Of a DNA stretch of 64,000 nucleotides, positions 14,502 to 54,205 are shown in pieces. A program made the translations under genes and the position numbers. The first letter of the stretch is position 1, and each line of letters opens with the position of its first letter. The notes under the pieces were generated by a model. That model ran no database searches. It saw nothing but the letters and a program-made list of their open reading frames with translations, and was not told the DNA's origin. This DNA comes from Oculina patagonica. Lineage: Eukaryota. The stretch covers positions 7,316,001-7,380,000 of the forward strand of contig NC_135770.1 of NCBI RefSeq assembly GCF_052425735.1, given 5' to 3'.

Positions 14502-17500
14502 AAAAGAAGAAAAGAAACCTTTGTAGATACTTACCAACACATTTATCTTTTTTCTTCTTGTAACCTAGCTATTTTGGGCGGTTTTCTGACGTTTGGAAAA
14601 AATTTTGAAATCCAAGATGGCGGATCCAAGTTGTCGGCTGTTTTGACATTATTTTGTAATTGTCACATGACATGACGTCATCATCCCGCGTGACGTATAC
14701 CAAAAGATAGATTTTTGGACAGACTATATATCATCTACGTTTCATTGTGATTGCTTAAATATTCTGGAAGTTACGAATTCCCCCCCCCCCCCCACGGTCT
14801 TAAAATATCCAAAAAAGCCCGGTCTGAATAGGGTTAAAGAAACCCAAAAATCTTCCGCATAAATGAAACGGTCCGTCCTATTAGTACCAACGCCGTTCAA
14901 CAACGGCGCAGCTGATTTATACTGCGAATGGCAGCGCTGGGTAAGTTGTTTCGATATTTACTCAGTGGCTTCCGAACTAGCCGAAAGGGACGACAAGGTC
15001 CAGCGAGCGACATTCCTGCACTTCCTTGGTTCCGCTGTGCAATGAATTTTCAAAACCTTGCCTGGAGTACACAAGAAGCTCGATGACGTCAAGCGAGCAC
15101 TGGAAGATTACTTCGCGACTAAAAGAAACGTGGTTGTTGAACGATACAAGCTTCCGTTTGAGAGAACAGAATCTAGAAAAGCCAATCGATAGTTGTCTAA
15201 CTGCTCTCGGAGAATAAGCGAAGTCATGCGAGTTTGGCTCCCTAGAAGAAGAAATGATCAGAAATCAGATCGTCGGGAAATGAGCGAATTAACTCTGACG
15301 AAGACAATGAAGATGGCCAGAAGTGAAGAGTCGTCAAAAAAGAATGCCAGCTACTTGCAAAGGAACAAAGGAAGACCCCATTCCAGTCGATCAAGTCGAC
15401 GCCAAAAAAAAAAAAAAAACGGATGGAGGAAGAGACAAGAAATTCATCTGTTTAATAAAAACACCTAAATAATTGCATTCACGGCAATAATTGCATTCTC
15501 GTATCCCACTCATATACTACCGTATATGAGTGGGATACGAGCTCATATACCACGGCCTGTTAACCAATCAAAACTCAGGAATTGCAATATACCGTGGCTA
15601 GATTATAATAATAGCTAGTATATTTATAGTTCATACCTGGTGGTTGTCGAGAACTGTCATAAGCTACGAGTCCCATAACTTTATCGATATCAATGAAAAC
15701 AGCACCAGTTCCTTTGGCAATGGAAGCGTTAAGTTTGTAAATCTCACCAGTAGTCCATTCAGAATAAAATAAAGACGAAGAAAGAAAAGTTACTCCAAAA
15801 AAATGTGTGCCACTTTGTTGAAAGAGTAATTTTCTGTTGTTGCCTTGGTAATCGACAGATTCTACTCTGTCCGTTCCCGCATCCACCCAGAAGACAAGTC
15901 TGTGTCGTCTGTCAAGGTCAATCCCGTTTGGCCAAAAAAGATTGGACGTTACTATGGTAACGCGTAGCGTACCCGATAAGGTGGCTTTCTCTATCTTTGG
16001 AGTTCGTCCCCAGTCCGTCCAGAACATTGACCTGTTGAGTAAGTGACATCACACTTAATATTTATTAGCCTGCAAACTTTTCGTCCCCCTGTTCTTTCGC
16101 ACCCCCCCCCCCCCTACTTTTGTAGTGGAATTATGGGACTGATAAACATTAGTCACGTGACATAGCACATGGAGCGAGCAACAGTTGAGCGAACGCGAGT
16201 CCTCCTTCTTCTTCAGTTCTTGTCGAGTCAGCATCTCTTCGTTAACAGTTAAAGTGTATATAAAGTTGTGTTTACAGTTCATTCTCGCAGTGGTTACTCT
16301 CAATTCCCCCGCTAATCCCTTTACAAGTGGTGGAGAACCCAAATTTCGTCGAACTCATCATGCATGCCAGCTACAATTGAAGAATTGCAAGGCATCGTGG
16401 CTGGACTTGTCAGCGTTGTGAAAGACTTAACAACAAACGTAACTCAAGTAACCCAAACAGTCGGCAACATGGCCGAAGCCGTTCCAGCACCAGTTCAACA
16501 CGAACATACACAAGGTCTTCGGATGCCTTCGATGCAGCTTCCTTCGTTTCGTCGAGATAGTGTGGTACAAGACGATATCTCGGAATTTCTGGAGCGGTTC
16601 AACCAGCAAACCTCACATCTTCCCGCCGGAACACGTTTCTCCCTTCTTGAACAACAGTGTGTTGGCGACTGGCCGAGATCTGTGTTGTCAATAGCAAAAA
16701 CTACAGAGGGCTACGCAGATAAAGCGGTAGAAGACCAATTTAACATTTGCATCGAAAGATTACGTGCAGAATTCGGCGAATCAAAAGAAGACAAGTGCCG
16801 CCGATTAGCAGCCGAGTTGAGCGCCATTCAACAAGAGCGTGGCGAGTCAGTGGAACAGTTTGCGTTCAAATACAAGAAACTACTGCATCAATTGGAGAAA
16901 CTTGGCGAAAAGATTGCGAAAGATTGTCCTACCTTTGTTATTTCACAGTTTATTTCTAAAGTCAAGCCCATTATTGCTCAGCAGCTCGTTGTGAAAGCAT
17001 CAGAATTTGAAACCCTCGATAAAGCAGTCGAAGCGGCTCGTCGTGTTGAGTTGTCATTTCAAACTCCGCCCGCCGCCTCGAAACCAAATCAGTCGCTCGA
17101 TGAATGGAAAGTTACACCACCGAATGCGTTTGTTTCCTCAACCTCCATGAAATCTCAAGATCAGCACTCCCAACGACAGCAGAGGGCTTGTTACACTTGT
17201 GGAGAAACAAATCATCTGTCGAGGTACTGTCCAAAATACCGCAAAGACACGTCAAAACAACCGGAGATATGCAGAAATTACAATCGATTTTCCAAATCTA
17301 ATTGCGAGGAAGACGGCAACAAATGCTCATATGGCCGACAACACAAGTGCCAACGCTGTAACAAGTGGGGCTGTAAAGCTATCAAACACTCAGAAAATCG
17401 CCCATCAAGCACATCTCGCAGCGCTGTTCCATCTGATGAGGTAAATTCTCTTAGGCAGCAACTCGTAGTCTTGTCTACTCGTCTGGAAAAATATGAAGCT

Positions 17501-20500
17501 CAGTGTACGGAGAAATCCTCGACTTCTATTCCTGCAGGATCTGAAAACCAAACCTCAACCTCAGCTTCACGACCACCACCTCCAGCTTCATTTGATCAGC
17601 CCTCAACACCTACTCCATTATTTGGATTACCTGCCGTTACCATCCCTGCACATTCAGCAAAGCCAGAAACTCAGTTGTGTCAGCGTAATATTCTGTGGAC
17701 CTCTGTTACATCTGCAGGTGAACCACTGCCCTTGCCATTGGATAGTTGTTGTTCTGTATCTCTTGTGAGCAAAGTACATGCTGATCTTGTTGCATCCAAA
17801 CGACCTGACCTCAAGTATTGTGCCCTTGAAGAACACATTTACCTCTGCAGATTCAAAGTCTGATCTTAAAGCAGTTGCCACTATGCAAATCCCCATCACA
17901 TGGGAAAATGAAACAGAAACTGTCTTTACTATGCTCGTAGTTCCAGGTCTCGTCTGGCCAATGCTCTTTGGAGAGAACCACCTTCATGCGACTCAGGCAT
18001 TGGTTGATCATTATGCTCCGTCCATCATCTTTCGCCATCCAAGTATGCAGTTTCGAGTCCAGTGCTCGCTTGACAATCCACTTCAAGGTTTTGCAAACAT
18101 CTCTGTACCCAATAGTTCCTCATCGTGTGCAAGTGGATCAACATCGCAGAAGCCTCATGTCAGTATTACATGCCTTCTTACCGGAGCACCACCACTGGGT
18201 GTTCACAAGCATTCACAATCCCTTCACCGTGGTCTTAATTTTGTTACGGTCTGTGTCACCCTTTCTGCAGCTTTAATGGGATACCAAGTAATGCGTCAAC
18301 CGCTTTGGATTGAGGGTAAAGTGACATTCAACCAGGTGTCAAGGTTCTCAGTGGTCCCTTTGATCTCAGCCAAATCTCAAGTCATGTGAAACCTGAAACA
18401 GCACGCCCTAGCAGTGATCCGTGCTACAATGCTCAGCTCATAGACCTTGCTGAAACACCAGATTCAGTTCTAACAGAAGAAACTCCTGACATGCACATCA
18501 CATACTGCACAACACTGGCAGTGGAATCTAAGTTGAAGAAGACAAGTATCCCTGAGAATGTCATTCTAGGAGATGTTAGAGACATGACAAAGGATGATGA
18601 TGATGTTCTCGAAGAAGCAGCCGACACTACTGCAAAACAACTTGCAGATGGATGGCTTACTTGGGCAAATACTCAGCAGCCACCTGCTTCATTGCAACCT
18701 CCAAAGGAAACTGAACATAAACATTGTGACTTAGACTTTTGTGCTCCAAAGCAATGGCAACTTTCAGTCCAAGTGAAAGAAATGGAAGATTCTGGTCTCA
18801 ACTCATCCATATTGTCTCCTTTCTGTGATGCCCTACCAGAATTTGATTGTCAAGGTCCTGAGTTTCCTCCAGAAGAAGAGCTGACCTGTGACCCTTACTC
18901 ATCTGCCTACAGTGATGCTATATTTCATGCCTTGGATTTAGATGGCCCAGAGTATTCTAATGTTGATGAAGATATCATGAAGAGATTTAAGGAACTTATC
19001 AGTCAGTATTCTACTGCATTTGCCCTCCCTGGTAGTCCACTCGGAGCTGTTAAGGGGTTTGAGCATAGAATTGACACAGCTGATGCCCCTCCCATCTATC
19101 GTCACCCATACAAGAAAAGCCCAGAAGAACTCAGAGCAATCAAAACAGAAATCGAGCGAATGCTTAAGCTAAAGATAATACAACCAAGTCATTCAGAATG
19201 GGGTTCCCCATGCATCCTGGTCCGCAAACCTCCAGAAAAGGGTAAACTGCAACCTCCAAGATTTGTGGTGGACTATCGCCGCCTCAACAGTGTGACACAA
19301 GGAGATGGTTACCCTATCCCCTCTATCTCTAGCGTTCTTGATGCTGTCAGCCAAGGAAAAGTATTTGCGAAATGTGACTTGGTCAGTGGTTACTGGCAAA
19401 TTTCTATCCGGCAATCGGATCAACACAAAACTGCATTTTGTACACACCTGGGACTGTACGAGTTTCTCAGGCTTCCCTTCGGATTAAAAACAGCACCAAA
19501 CACATTTCAGCGGATTTTAAACACTGTATTTGCAGATTACTTGCACAAGTGGCTTGTTGTTTACGTGGATGACATAATTCAGTGGGCAATGACAGACGAG
19601 GAAGCCCTTGAACATTATTCATTGTTGTTTCAGAGACTGGTTAAAGTTGGTATGCAACTGAAACCTTCCAAGTGTACATTCTTCGCAAGGGAAATCGAAA
19701 TACTGGGACATCGGATCACCCAAGAAGGTCGAACACCAATAAGCAAAGGAGTAGAAGCAATCTTATCTATGCCCACACCAACTAACACTTCTGCAGTCAA
19801 GCGTTTTCTTGGACTTTGTGGATATTTTAGAGACTTTATTCCATGCATGTCTACCCGAACACAAGCCTTGCGATCTCTTCTCAAGAAGGGTGTGTCATTT
19901 CAGTGGACCGAAGAAACAGCAAGAGAGTTTAAAGACTTGAAGCAAGCAATCACTGGCCCAGATGTTATGTTGTTCCATCCTGATTGGAATGCTCAGTTTG
20001 AATTACATGTGGATGCTAGCAAGCTAGGATGCGGAGCAATGTTAGCTCAAGAGAAGCATGGCATACTTCGCCCCGTGAGATTTGCATCCCGAGCATTTAC
20101 ACCAGCTGAATCACGTTGGACAACGATGCACCAGGAACTCTTTGCTGTGAAATGGGGACTTGAACAGTTTCGCTCTTACATACTAGGCCGAAGAGTTAAA
20201 GTTGTAACCGATCATGCGAATCTTAAATGGTTGACTACCATGGCACCACAACAGGCAAAAGTTGCAAGATGGTGCATGAGCATGGCTGAGTTTGACTTTT
20301 TCATCGAACACAGAAAAGGGGAAAGAAATGTTGTTCCTGATGTTCTCAGCCGTCACCCTGTAAAAGAAAACATTCCTGAAGACAATGTTGTTATACCTCC
20401 AGAGAACAGTGTTATCGCATTTATGATTATCGCAACCTCAGTTGATGTTCCACACCACACCCCTGAACTTGTTCATGTAACATTTAACAATACTATGGCT

Positions 20501-23500
20501 TGTTTACACAATGCATGTCTTATACCTCAAGCTGATTGCCTCGACCCAATCTGCCTGGCTACTGCTCCAAAGAGAAACAAATGTACAAAGGAAACTCAAA
20601 GCAAAACTTCTGTTACAAACCAGACCAAGACTCCTCAAGTTGGTACATCTCAACAAAGTCCATCTTCAGACTGCGACTTTCAAGACTTTGAAAATTTGGA
20701 ATCTTTAAACCGGAATCGGTCAAAGTTTGCTAAGAAACAGCTACAAGATTACTGGTTAAATCTGCTAAGAAAGTTTCACAGCTCAAATCAAGATCTTTCT
20801 GCATTTAAGAACATTCCAAAGGAACACTTGCAATGGGTTAAACAAATGGCAAAGCGCTCAGCTGTTATTGACGGTTTGTTAATGTATCGAGATGAACTTA
20901 TGGAGGACCCAAATCACTATCGTATTATGGTTCCCAATGACATTCAACTTCAACGTCATCTCTTACGTGTATATCATGATTCACCTGTGGGAATGCATCG
21001 TGGACGCGAAGCTACTTATGGATCTCTTTCTTATGACTTTTATTGGCGAAATATGACTAAGCATGTGAGGAACTGGATCGGGCGTTGCCCTGCCTGTATC
21101 AAATTTAAGTCTATTGATCCCAAACATGGACCAATGCAAATTCGCATATACGACCGTCCCTTCAGCACCATTGGTATAGACTATGTTGGACAATTGCCTT
21201 CTACCCCAGCTGGTAACAAATGGATTCTGACTGCTGTTTGTCCCTACTCTAATTTCTTGCGGGCAATTCCGGTCCCAGATAAACAAGCAACTACTGCAGC
21301 ACGAGCTCTGTTTAATGATGTTTTCCTGCAATACGGATTTCCAGCAGTCTTACAAAGCGATCAAGGAGGAGAATGGCTTAATGCGGTATTACGCCAGCTA
21401 ACAAAACTTCTCTCAATTGAACACATTGTTACAACAAGTTACCGTCCACGGCTAAATGGAAGTACAGAACGTGTTCACAGATGGTTGAATGCAGCAATAG
21501 GAATTTATTGTGAGAAACACCAGGAACCCTGGGAAGAGTTTCTGCAGCCAGCTGCATATGCTCACAATGTATCTCCAATTCTCACAATGTATCTCCAATT
21601 AGTCCATTCTTCTTGGTATTTGGCCGCAACGCACCATCACCTGAAGTCATTTCTCTTGACTTACCTGAAGAAAGCCTCTCAAGAAGCACCTATGCAGAGC
21701 AGCTTGTGTCTCGTATGCGTGAAGCACAAAAACAGTTCAACAGCATCAAAGCGGATATGAAGAGAACTCAAAGAGAATATTATGATAAATCATCCAGGGG
21801 ACTTAACATTGCAGAAGGAAAGCAAGTTTATGTTAGAAGACCACCTCCGAGTTCACAACCAAAAGGATCAGCCACACGGTTCATTCGTCGATTTGATGGT
21901 CCTTACACTGTTATAGGACATGTTCATGGTCGCCAGGATCTATTGCGACTTCGACACAAATTCACTCAGGATGAGATTAAAACAGTAAACATTGAAAAGA
22001 TCATTGTTGTGCCAGATGAACTTTCAGAAGAAGTAGATTATGATCTCAGAAATAATGAAGAACCACCATCTAACACAGAGACAGTTACCCCTCCTGAATT
22101 ACCCACTCGAAAGAGTGCAGCAATTGATCCTGATTTGGCAAAGTTAGCATTTGCTTTTGGACATTATCTGAACAGTCTACCAGGTGCAAAGGCATATGCA
22201 TCAGAAGCCTGCAAAGTGGTGTACCAGCAGATTCCAGATGCACAGGAAATTTTGAAACGTTGCGGAAAACTTAAAGGACTGATTTCAAAGTGCCCTTATC
22301 TATCCATGTCTGGAGGCTCACATGGAGGATCTTACTTGTTAAAACTTGACAAAGACATGTTTGCAACTTTAGTTTCAGAAAACTAAAATCCCTTTTAAGA
22401 AGGGGTGGACTCATGAGGATTATAGACTGTTAAGATTTTCTTGTTAGCTTTGTTTCAAATTTATTCATCATGTACATTGTAATCGTTTGTCGTAAGTTAC
22501 TCCCTTAAAGAAGGGGTGGACTGTAGTGGAATTATGGGACTGATAAACATTAGTCACGTGACATAGCACATGGAGCGAGCAACAGTCGAGCGAACGCGAG
22601 TCCTCCTTCTTCTTCAGTTCTTGTCGAGTCAGCATCTCCTCGTTAACAGTTAAAGTGTATATAAAGTTGTGTTTACAGTTCATTCTCGCAGTGGTTACTC
22701 TCAATTCCCCCGCTAGTCCCTTTACACTTTTTCACCCCAAACTAAGCTATATAATTAAAAATATAACACAAACAGCGGTGATAAACATTATGAAAATAAT
22801 GTGTTATATTTTTAATCAAGTTACGATGGCCTAAAACCAAGAGTCTATAAGCTATATAATGTAAGGCAAAGTTGCACTGGATATATTTATTGGAGGCAAC
22901 ATCCATACCATTTCTGTTACAGAACGTGGTATAACCTAGAAAATCAGTTAAAATCCGCGCTCTTTAGCCATTGGCTTAACAACTAGTTCATACTCCTTTG
23001 TATAGTTTTTTTTAATCGTACTGTTTTTGACTACTCTATTATATTCCATTATATTNNNNNNNNNNNNNNNNNNNNNNNNNNNNNNNNNNNNNNNNNNNNN
23101 NNNNNNNNNNNNNNNNNNNNNNNNNNNNNNNNNNNNNNNNNNNNNNNNNNNNNNNNNNNNNNNNNNNNNNNNNNNNNNNNNNNNNNNNNNNNNNNNNNNN
23201 NNNNNNNNNNNNNNNNNNNNNNAGATTTACCCGGGTCTGTCTTTCTTAATATACATTCACCAGAAAATATAGTTTTGTTTTAGCGCTAAATCCCAGACGT
23301 TTCGGCACTGCTGTCCATTCATCAGTGGAACTAATTTGTCTAACCTTGTTGTGAATTTCCACGCTAGAACGAAACTATAATTTTCTTGTGAATGTATATG
23401 AAGGCGCTACAAAGTTTCAACCTTATTGTGGGTCTGCTTGTTAGAACCAATCACTTACGGCTGTGAACTCGGCCCAGCTTACTGCGCATATGTACATATC

Positions 23501-53984: not shown

Positions 53985-54205
53985 TGTGCTACTCCCCCTG
54001 GATGGGATGCTAGTCCATTGCATGCCCACCCCCCCCCCCTCCCCCCGCTGTAAATTCGACGGAACCCATTTATGTGCCTGGGTTGAGAGAGGCACAGTGA
54101 GAGTAAAGTGTCGTACCCGAAAACACAAGCGCCCAGCGATGGCCCAAACCCAGGCCATTAGACCCAGAGTCGAGTGCGCTTACCATTGGGATACCATGCC
54201 TTCCA
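53985..54205 (-). mobile_element. tRNA-derived SINE (degenerate)
   Basis: Degenerate A/B-box head on the minus strand (tggtaagcgcactcgactc, ctgggtttgggcc), followed by ctttactctcactgtgcctctctc. Confidence 0.6.

Follow-up and report, generated by a model that had tools for sequence, protein, structure and literature searches.

A Ty3/Gypsy retrotransposon of the coral Oculina patagonica joins a predicted LOTUS-like winged helix to its integrase and inserts on the 5' side of G-tracts

The window analysed here, a stretch of 64,000 nucleotides from Oculina patagonica (assembly GCF_052425735.1, contig NC_135770.1, positions 7,316,001 to 7,380,000), contains at 16121–22726 a young Ty3/Gypsy LTR retrotransposon whose features all lie on the forward (+) strand. 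The element is bounded by two LTRs of 205 bp (5' LTR, TG...CA, 16121–16325; 3' LTR, 22522–22726) that are 99% identical, and the target-site duplication CTTT stands on either side of it (16117–16120 and 22727–22730). A primer-binding-site region immediately 3' of the 5' LTR (16326–16343) recurs after the 5' LTRs of other copies, and a polypurine tract (22507–22521) directly precedes the 3' LTR. The gag ORF (16364–17863) carries a CCHC zinc knuckle and the pol ORF (18386–21760) encodes reverse transcriptase (RT), RNase H and the integrase H2C2 zinc domain and rve catalytic core, as judged by Pfam; this domain order, the LTR pair with its short duplication, the PBS-like and polypurine sequences beside the LTRs and an FDGPY motif place the element in Ty3/Gypsy. 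The protease-region ORF (17778–18389) occupies a frame of its own in the window copy because the frame breaks near 17838 and 18321. A tract of 13 C on the forward strand (16102–16114), that is, a G-run on the minus strand, lies 6 bp upstream of the insertion and is the presumed target feature.

The integrase continues in a separate ORF (21613–22386), which comprises the C-terminal region with the GPY/F module (21613–22017; GPY of the FDGPY motif at 21898–21906), an acidic, proline-rich linker of 35 amino acids (22018–22122) and, at its end, a winged-helix domain followed by the stop codon (22123–22386). In the window copy the frame of this ORF differs from that of the catalytic-core ORF because of a local tandem duplication of ~20 nt at 21561–21600, which breaks the integrase frame; in other copies in the O. 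patagonica genome the entire gag-pol, including the winged-helix domain, is one open frame of 2018 codons. Contigs assembled from RNA-labelled runs span the element and the domain, although such contigs do not prove transcription. A preliminary description of this DNA had pointed to a discrete domain of ~85 amino acids behind the GPY motif and the acidic linker, in the slot that a chromodomain would occupy. Translation of 22123–22386 (+) reproduces the peptide it reported, together with a leading Ile, the tail DKDMFATLVSEN and the stop codon. The proposed position also holds: the segment is modelled as a compact winged helix, and neither the ORFs of the window nor intact copies from the three subfamilies gave a chromo-family match in Pfam.

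Conservation bears out the further expectation that the domain is maintained by selection in related elements. It is kept in three subfamilies of the O. patagonica genome (~96–100%, 60% and 35–40% identity), in elements of three other assemblies (49–67% identical) and in 115 protein clusters retrieved by a profile search of a 1.84-billion-protein library. Between subfamilies 1 and 2, for which pS is saturated near 0.8, the domain and the GPY/F region have pN values of 0.31 and 0.25, respectively, against 0.69 for the adjacent linker, which is unconstrained (pN 0.63–0.72 between subfamilies). Purifying selection thus acts on the domain in at least three subfamilies and in other assemblies, and the domain's conservation, its occurrence in 115 clusters and its confident compact fold exclude a chance reading frame. 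Nearly invariant residues concentrate on helix α2 (S37, A39, C40, K41 and Y44; motif S-x-A-C-K) and include the basic positions R51, R56, K/R59 and K/R61 and a Gly-rich wing; the median net charge is +4 and the basic surface is conserved.

The profile search of the 1.84-billion-protein library returned solely integrase C-terminal fragments and deletion derivatives, and no cellular gene family. Two of its matches were set aside: P0097 (1146 amino acids, 11 matching stretches) is a false positive in a low-complexity repeat, and P0063, which contains LRRs, looks like a chimeric gene model. Derivatives with internal deletions that have lost the RT and the integrase core still retain the winged-helix domain. 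Splicing was rejected as their source for the single junction examined, because that junction sits at a short direct repeat and does not have GT..AG boundaries.

Two AlphaFold (AF2) models of the domain (pLDDT 85.5 and 85.6, pTM 0.76 and 0.74) agree on the topology α1-β1-α2-α3-α4-β2-β3-α5, with the three-helix core, the β-hairpin wing and the pairing of β1 to the hairpin that define a winged helix. Hundreds of winged-helix chains reach Z ≥ 5 against these models. The best solved match for both is the LOTUS domain of MARF1 (Z 8.6, 9.1 and 8.5), which superposes with an rmsd of 2.1–2.3 Å over 69–73 of 71–73 residues. TDRD5 (Z 8.0–8.3), TDRD7 (7.2–7.9), Tejas (6.7–7.7) and Egalitarian (7.2–7.5) are all among the top 24 of 48,161 chains, MARF1 and OST-HTH entries turn up repeatedly in searches of AFDB and the ESM Atlas, and language-model features point to LOTUS/OST-HTH as well. 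In every library tried, LOTUS/OST-HTH and Egalitarian domains are the best or near-best structural neighbours. The winged helices of PadR, SarX, RosR, Nse and the forkhead protein FOXN1, however, tie with them to within 1 Z unit.

Sequence comparison gives no such indication. None of 44 members of the domain family matches the Pfam OST-HTH profile (PF12872) at E values up to 10, Pfam assigns no relevant family to the domain and its 44 homologues, and a PF12872 scan of the O. patagonica genome recovers 17 host LOTUS exons and 0 element copies. Profile–profile comparison with hhalign yields a probability of 0.3% for the LOTUS domains of the host and of 0.2% for a profile built from 110 LOTUS sequences. 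The sole match in an HMM search of PDB sequences, the DEK C-terminal domain (E 0.79), found no support in the fold searches. The original suggestion of a LOTUS/OST-HTH module therefore divides in two: modelling and structure searches return the winged helix with MARF1 foremost, whereas the Pfam and profile results do not support membership of the family by sequence. As modelled, the domain is LOTUS-like in its fold; homology to LOTUS is unproven because of the Z-score ties with other winged helices and the lack of sequence similarity.

The modelled likeness to the LOTUS domains of MARF1, TDRD5, TDRD7, Oskar and Tejas comprises the shared α1-β1-α2-α3-α4-β2-β3 layout, over which essentially the whole MARF1 domain superposes, and a similar hydrophobic pattern leading up to the last helix's conserved Pro; those domains differ in being fused to Tudor, NYN or OSK modules, whereas the coral domain is fused to integrase. 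The structural match to Egalitarian ED1/ED2 (PF23713; PDB 9rvy) is of interest in that helix 2 of these domains has small side chains and docks in the minor groove of A-form helices (PMC13186709), and α2 bears the most conserved motif of the coral domain. Egalitarian, however, acts as a dimer with extra domains on bent dsRNA stem-loops and has no sequence similarity to the coral domain, whose nucleic-acid binding is putative.

We considered whether, in line with the more speculative idea of the preliminary description, the module may instead be of the eLOTUS type and bind Vasa or germ-granule components, bringing element proteins to the nuage and serving germline expression or counter-silencing. 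The modelled fold agrees with that of the eLOTUS proteins TDRD5, TDRD7 and Tejas, a C-terminal helix α5 is predicted behind the hairpin (residues 87–96) and the small residues of α2 are conserved; in eLOTUS domains, α2 and α5 are the two elements that contact Vasa (PMC5458760). Alignments with solved eLOTUS chains nevertheless stop at model residues 87–88 and leave α5 unaligned, and similarity to LOTUS at the sequence level is absent. Given also that a domain fused to integrase works in the nucleus, at integration, and that the insertion pattern described below offers a simpler role, we regard this explanation as very unlikely.

The insertion sites of domain-bearing elements follow a sharp rule. 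A poly-G or G-rich tract lies 0–15 bp away from all 18 insertions for which both flanks could be read, and the same holds for a further three insertions from other assemblies. In each of the 18, exactly one outward flank is at least 50% G, and in 12 a G-run of at least 8 begins no more than 15 nt from the LTR end; against backgrounds of 0.57% and 0.11% per strand-specific site, these associations have P ~1e-36 and ~1e-28, respectively. The pattern is polar (18 G-runs versus 1 C-run): the insertion site is invariably 5' of the G-run, with the element in either orientation. Duplications of 4 bp accompany 20 such insertions, two of them from other assemblies, and are perfect in 18.

Genome-wide counts of exact patterns in subfamily 2 reflect the same polarity, with G8 after the 3' LTR at 6 loci, C8 before the 5' LTR at 4 loci, three of which have no G-run in the 3' flank, and the opposite polarity at 0 loci. 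The 7 of 17 subfamily 2 loci that fail the strict G8/C8 pattern could represent shorter or interrupted tracts or mismatches in the LTR. Subfamily 3 and the domain-bearing elements of the three other assemblies repeat the pattern, and the one unrelated Gypsy element taken for comparison, from another assembly, has no adjacent G-run. Domain-bearing elements thus integrate on the 5' side of a poly(dG) or G-rich tract, at a distance of 0–15 bp. In our literature search, homing to G-tracts was not reported for any LTR element.

Given that homopolymers are prone to sequencing error and that the assemblies used may all stem from similar pipelines, an association with poly-G could in principle reflect assembly or sequencing artefacts, such as those of poly-G reads, or a by-product of reverse transcription, and not the target site itself. 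We find this scarcely credible. Unique sequence flanks the tracts on both sides within multi-megabase contigs, the tracts fall outside the 4-bp duplication and on a single side of each element, and several targets are not homopolymers but G-rich motifs with interruptions. Neither the polarity rule nor the complementary 5'/3' pattern of subfamily 2 is expected from an artefact, and G/C runs also occur away from elements, at ~1 per 9 kb.

The insertion specificity lends strong, if indirect, support to the earlier idea that the domain serves in targeting, and suggests that the winged helix is a G-tract targeting module. In the mechanism we propose, the winged helix, joined by a flexible linker behind the GPY/F module, would recognise the G-tract and thereby set the intasome at the 5' edge of that tract. 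Such recognition may be direct, with the conserved small-residue helix α2 and the basic patch reading an A-like G:C duplex, or with the domain reading an unpaired or G-quadruplex G-strand; it may also be indirect, through contact with a host factor bound to the G-tract. By either route the domain would be the counterpart of the chromodomain in chromoviruses. Taken as a whole, this reading, a Gypsy integrase with a LOTUS-like winged helix that directs insertion 5' of G-tracts, is the one towards which we lean on balance.

The specificity for G-tracts may also be real yet reside outside the winged helix. For instance, the integrase core or the GPY/F module might favour the distorted B/A junction at the tract edge, or some other part of the integrase might contact a host protein that binds G-tracts. 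In that case the winged helix would serve a different purpose, such as multimerisation of the integrase, import into the nucleus or the binding of RNA or cDNA of the element itself. Most characterised targeting by LTR elements is tethering to host proteins, as in Ty1–AC40, Ty3–TFIIIB and Ty5–Sir4, the insertion data concern the integrase as a whole, and the persistence of the domain in the coreless derivatives would fit a function unrelated to integration. Against this stand the facts that the domain is the one lineage-specific addition common to the three subfamilies and the foreign copies that show the bias, that it occupies the slot of known targeting domains and carries a conserved basic surface, and that binding to poly(G) is reported for the fold family nearest to it (PMC7498356). 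We therefore judge a source of specificity outside the winged helix to be rather unlikely.

A more specific form of the targeting proposal takes the domain for a genuine LOTUS derivative that has diverged strongly; acquired by an ancient cnidarian Gypsy lineage, it would read G-tracts, G-quadruplex-prone DNA or G-rich RNA/R-loops located there directly and so guide the intasome to the 5' edge. LOTUS domains are reported to bind both poly(G) and G-rich ssRNA at ~10 nM, as well as RNA G4 (PMC7498356), which echoes the G-tract targets of the coral element. The published domains, however, favour RNA and bind DNA G4 weakly (PMC7498356), whereas the presumed ligand of the coral domain is genomic DNA. 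We offer this derivation tentatively, as possible rather than probable.

Comparison with other elements places the targeting proposal in context. Chromoviruses such as Tf1 and MAGGY belong to the same Ty3/Gypsy superfamily, share the gene order and likewise carry a small extra domain behind the integrase GPY/F, a position known to steer the choice of integration site. Their addition, however, is a chromodomain and their target a histone mark, whereas the coral element has a winged helix and an apparent target at the 5' edge of a G-tract. Ty1, Ty3, Ty5 and Tf1, as well as non-LTR elements specific for simple repeats, resemble it in highly non-random insertion beside a defined genomic feature, which as a rule does the host no harm; the former differ in being led by host proteins to Pol III genes, heterochromatin or promoters, and the latter in using an endonuclease and target-primed reverse transcription.

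The choice of integration site governs both the harm that a mobile element does and the places where it accumulates. The integrase additions known so far, such as chromodomains and short motifs for tethering to the host, read either chromatin or proteins of the host; what is new here is a LOTUS-like winged-helix addition combined with a sharp, polar target rule, the 5' edge of G-runs. Were the domain a diverged LOTUS derivative that reads G-tracts directly, it would represent a natural genomic use of the poly(G)-binding property of LOTUS and, within the literature searched, the first nucleic-acid-binding targeting domain described in an LTR-retrotransposon integrase that reads sequence or structure. 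If domain and target rule are causally linked, they would provide a compact, testable model of integration guided by a DNA feature and an independent view of how LOTUS-type folds recognise G-rich nucleic acids; the link would also help to explain the persistence of these elements in coral genomes, where they land beside simple repeats and not genes. The target rule also makes the G-tracts of these genomes hot spots of insertion, a point that bears on annotation and on how structural variation in corals is read.

The element at 16121-22726 is a complete Ty3/Gypsy LTR retrotransposon, bounded by 205-bp TG...CA LTRs (16121-16325 and 22522-22726, 99% identical to each other) and a 4-bp target duplication, CTTT. 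A PBS and a PPT adjoin the LTRs, gag carries a CCHC knuckle, and pol comprises RT, RNase H, an H2C2 zinc domain and the rve core. Plus-strand translation of 22123-22386 reproduced the peptide quoted in the preliminary description, followed by DKDMFATLVSEN and a stop codon. The domain's placement after a GPY motif and an acidic, proline-rich linker could be read directly in the ORF at 21613-22386 (+), which leads from the integrase C-terminal region with its FDGPY motif through the 35-aa linker (22018-22122, +) to the domain (22123-22386, +) as its final part. Three breaks interrupt the frame of the window copy, two of them near 17838 and 18321 and one at a local duplication (21561-21600); other copies in the genome run from gag through the domain in one unbroken frame of 2018 codons, and the domain is therefore the true C-terminus of the polyprotein's integrase.

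We modelled the domain with AlphaFold2 from two alignments, one headed by the window's sequence and the other by a 33%-identical subfamily-3 sequence. Both models (pLDDT 85.5 and 85.6; pTM 0.76 and 0.74) have the topology a1-b1-a2-a3-a4-b2-b3-a5, and as modelled the domain is for certain a winged helix, as had been proposed from the sequence. A structural search of 48,161 chains placed MARF1 LOTUS first for both (Z 8.6, rmsd 2.3 Å, 71/71 residues for the first; Z 8.5, rmsd 2.1 Å, 69/71 residues for the second), with Z 9.1 for the first model in a second-look search. Other LOTUS matches came from TDRD5 (Z 8.0-8.3), TDRD7 (7.2-7.9) and Tejas (6.7-7.7), together with the Egalitarian LOTUS-like domain (7.2-7.5). 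MARF1 orthologues recurred among Swiss-Prot models (TM 0.59-0.63, all Foldseek E-values being weak), several OST-HTH and NYN/OST-HTH proteins were returned from AFDB clusters and the ESM Atlas, and language-model features gave the same pointer. The winged helices of RosR, SarX, PadR, Nse and forkhead proteins score at most one Z unit from the LOTUS matches. On these models LOTUS appears to be the best-fitting winged-helix subtype, with homology unproven.

The LOTUS-like assignment is suggested by the fold but finds no support in sequence comparison. No Pfam match was found in the domain in 44 members, and a PF12872 scan of the genome recovered no element copies, matching instead 17 host LOTUS exons from a MARF1-like cluster and TDRD-like genes. 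When aligned with hhalign, the host LOTUS domains scored a probability of 0.3% and a profile built from 110 PF12872 proteins one of 0.2%. The host loci are a MARF1-like cluster of at least seven LOTUS exons (G000:C12:29822899-29837286, duplicated on C1295), a three-LOTUS locus of TDRD5/7-like appearance (G000:C1:38325412-38329184) and single exons at G000:C9:26623024 and G000:C1:30009747; the element's domain showed no sequence resemblance to these genes. The germ-granule role raised in the preliminary description would make the domain an eLOTUS-like module that binds Vasa or germ-granule components. Small a2 residues and the a5 helix predicted by the models hint at it (PMC5458760), but a5 does not align to solved eLOTUS chains, and we regard this role as improbable.

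A six-frame search of the 529-Mb assembly gave 28 domain matches in three subfamilies (about 96-100%, about 60% and about 35-40% identical to the window's domain), all with Gypsy gene order. An exhaustive search of 1.84 billion representative proteins with the domain profile matched 115 clusters; these are either C-terminal pieces of integrase or internal-deletion derivatives, with no cellular gene family among them. One 1146-aa protein of ~60-aa tandem repeats, P0097, with 11 stretches matching the profile, was rejected as a low-complexity false positive. Several independent derivatives from other assemblies and from diverged lineages lack RT, RNase H and the integrase core through internal deletion, yet keep the domain in frame behind gag/protease (loci L028/L009, G000:C3:23055662-23055936, and L083:7001-9799; database proteins P0020, P0007, P0161 and P0119/P0120). 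One is an open ORF of 932 aa, and in the one copy examined a short direct repeat marks the deletion junction, as in microhomology, and splice-like boundaries are absent. In subfamily 3 the winged helix is followed by a ~115-aa C-terminal extension (about the last 115 codons of the pol ORF at locus L031:3163-6687) that has no Pfam match.

Synonymous sites are saturated between subfamilies (pS about 0.8). Between subfamilies 1 and 2, pN was 0.13 in the integrase core, 0.25 in the GPY/F region, 0.31 in the winged-helix domain and 0.69 in the linker. The linker has diverged about as far as silent sites, so purifying selection acts on the domain but not on the linker. Contigs of RNA-labelled coral metatranscriptome runs, whose labels point to a stony coral, cover almost all of the element, domain included, at ~96% identity, although assembled contigs are no proof of transcription. 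One 6.4-kb contig matches window positions 16727-22539 (~96%) and diverges from 18 nt into the 3' LTR; other coral samples therefore contain a related subfamily that has another LTR and may be expressed.

The window copy lies 6 bp from a 13-nt C-run (16102-16114). Both flanks could be read for 18 insertions: 16 belong to subfamily 1 or its older relatives, among them solo LTRs of as little as 72% identity, and subfamilies 2 and 3 contribute one each. Exactly one outward flank is at least 50% G in 18/18, and 12/18 have a G-run of at least 8 starting within 15 nt of the LTR end. Against a background of 176 kb (the window and unrelated host loci), where 0.57% of strand-specific positions have a flank this G-rich and 0.11% have one with G8 or more, the enrichment is P about 1e-36 and about 1e-28, respectively. 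The G-rich stretch usually lies just past the 4-bp duplication; its distance from the LTR end is 0-11 nt for the majority of insertions and never more than 15 nt. When flanks are read outwards from the element, 5' to 3', 18 show a G-run and one a C-run (P 4e-5), the lone C-run beginning 15 nt out. Elements land 5' of the G-run whichever way they point, the two orientations being split 13 to 7 among 20 insertions with both flanks known, two of them from other assemblies; the duplication is perfect in 18 of these 20.

Exact-pattern searches of the whole genome confirmed this polarity for subfamily 2: G8 follows the 3' LTR at six loci and C8 precedes the 5' LTR at four, three of the latter being exactly those elements without a G-run in the 3' flank, and no locus has either opposite arrangement. 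The rule fits 6/7 subfamily-3 copies, including one with a 5'-side tract and matching duplication. Three copies in other public assemblies (domains 49-67% identical) obey it too: in one, G15 immediately follows the duplication, another has C22 at 6 bp upstream, and in the third a G-rich run lies 7 nt downstream. An unrelated Gypsy with a PEG10-type capsid and 426-bp LTRs (L049:1695-8026, ENA ERZ25878500, another assembly) sits just upstream of an integrase fragment that carries the domain, and has probably inserted into the element to which that fragment belongs; the outer flanks of the unrelated Gypsy adjoin no G-run, a weak negative control from a single comparison element.

The genome is rich in runs of 8 or more G or C, with seven per 64 kb in the window, and most have no neighbouring element, so they are host features rather than insertion products. 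These homopolymers of 11-18 nt lie at 1767-1779, 2242-2252, 2598-2614, 2749-2766, 14780-14793, 16102-16114 and 54029-54039. Unrelated host loci totalling 54 kb contain four such runs, and in both sets the runs are far commoner than base composition predicts; a ...gatataag motif precedes two of the window's runs, and some may belong to another repeat family. That the association arises from assembly or reverse transcription is very hard to credit, since each tract is found beyond the duplication and flanks the element on a single side, and several tracts are interrupted motifs.

All three subfamilies, and the foreign copies as well, combine the conserved domain with polar insertion at G-tract edges, and we infer that the winged helix is a G-tract targeting module. 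Specificity could instead come from elsewhere in the integrase or from a host tether, the domain having another job, which we consider a less likely but serious alternative. The winged helix sits in the chromodomain's slot on a flexible linker, and this position, a conserved basic patch (K41, R51, R56, K/R59 and K/R61; median net charge +4) and the domain's most conserved motif, S-x-A-C-K at the start of a2, argue for such a role. The poly(dG):poly(dC) duplex tends strongly towards the A form. Poly(G) and G-rich single-stranded RNA are ligands of LOTUS domains, with an affinity of about 10 nM, and so are RNA G-quadruplexes, whereas DNA G4 is bound only weakly (PMC7498356). The LOTUS-like domains of Egalitarian place helix 2, whose side chains are small, in the minor groove of an A-form duplex (PMC13186709). 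Both the poly(G) binding and the helix-2 entry fit a targeting role. The module might read the G-tract duplex directly, recognise the G-strand in an unpaired or quadruplex state, or be tethered to a host G-tract-binding protein; the fixed polarity favours an oriented, specific contact over a general compositional bias.

Full-text literature searches, of incomplete coverage, returned no description of an LTR-retrotransposon integrase with a LOTUS or winged-helix domain, and none of G-tract-specific LTR elements. In the coral Gypsy integrase a winged helix occupies the slot of the chromodomain, and the domain-bearing elements may be likened to those with known integrase C-terminal targeting modules.
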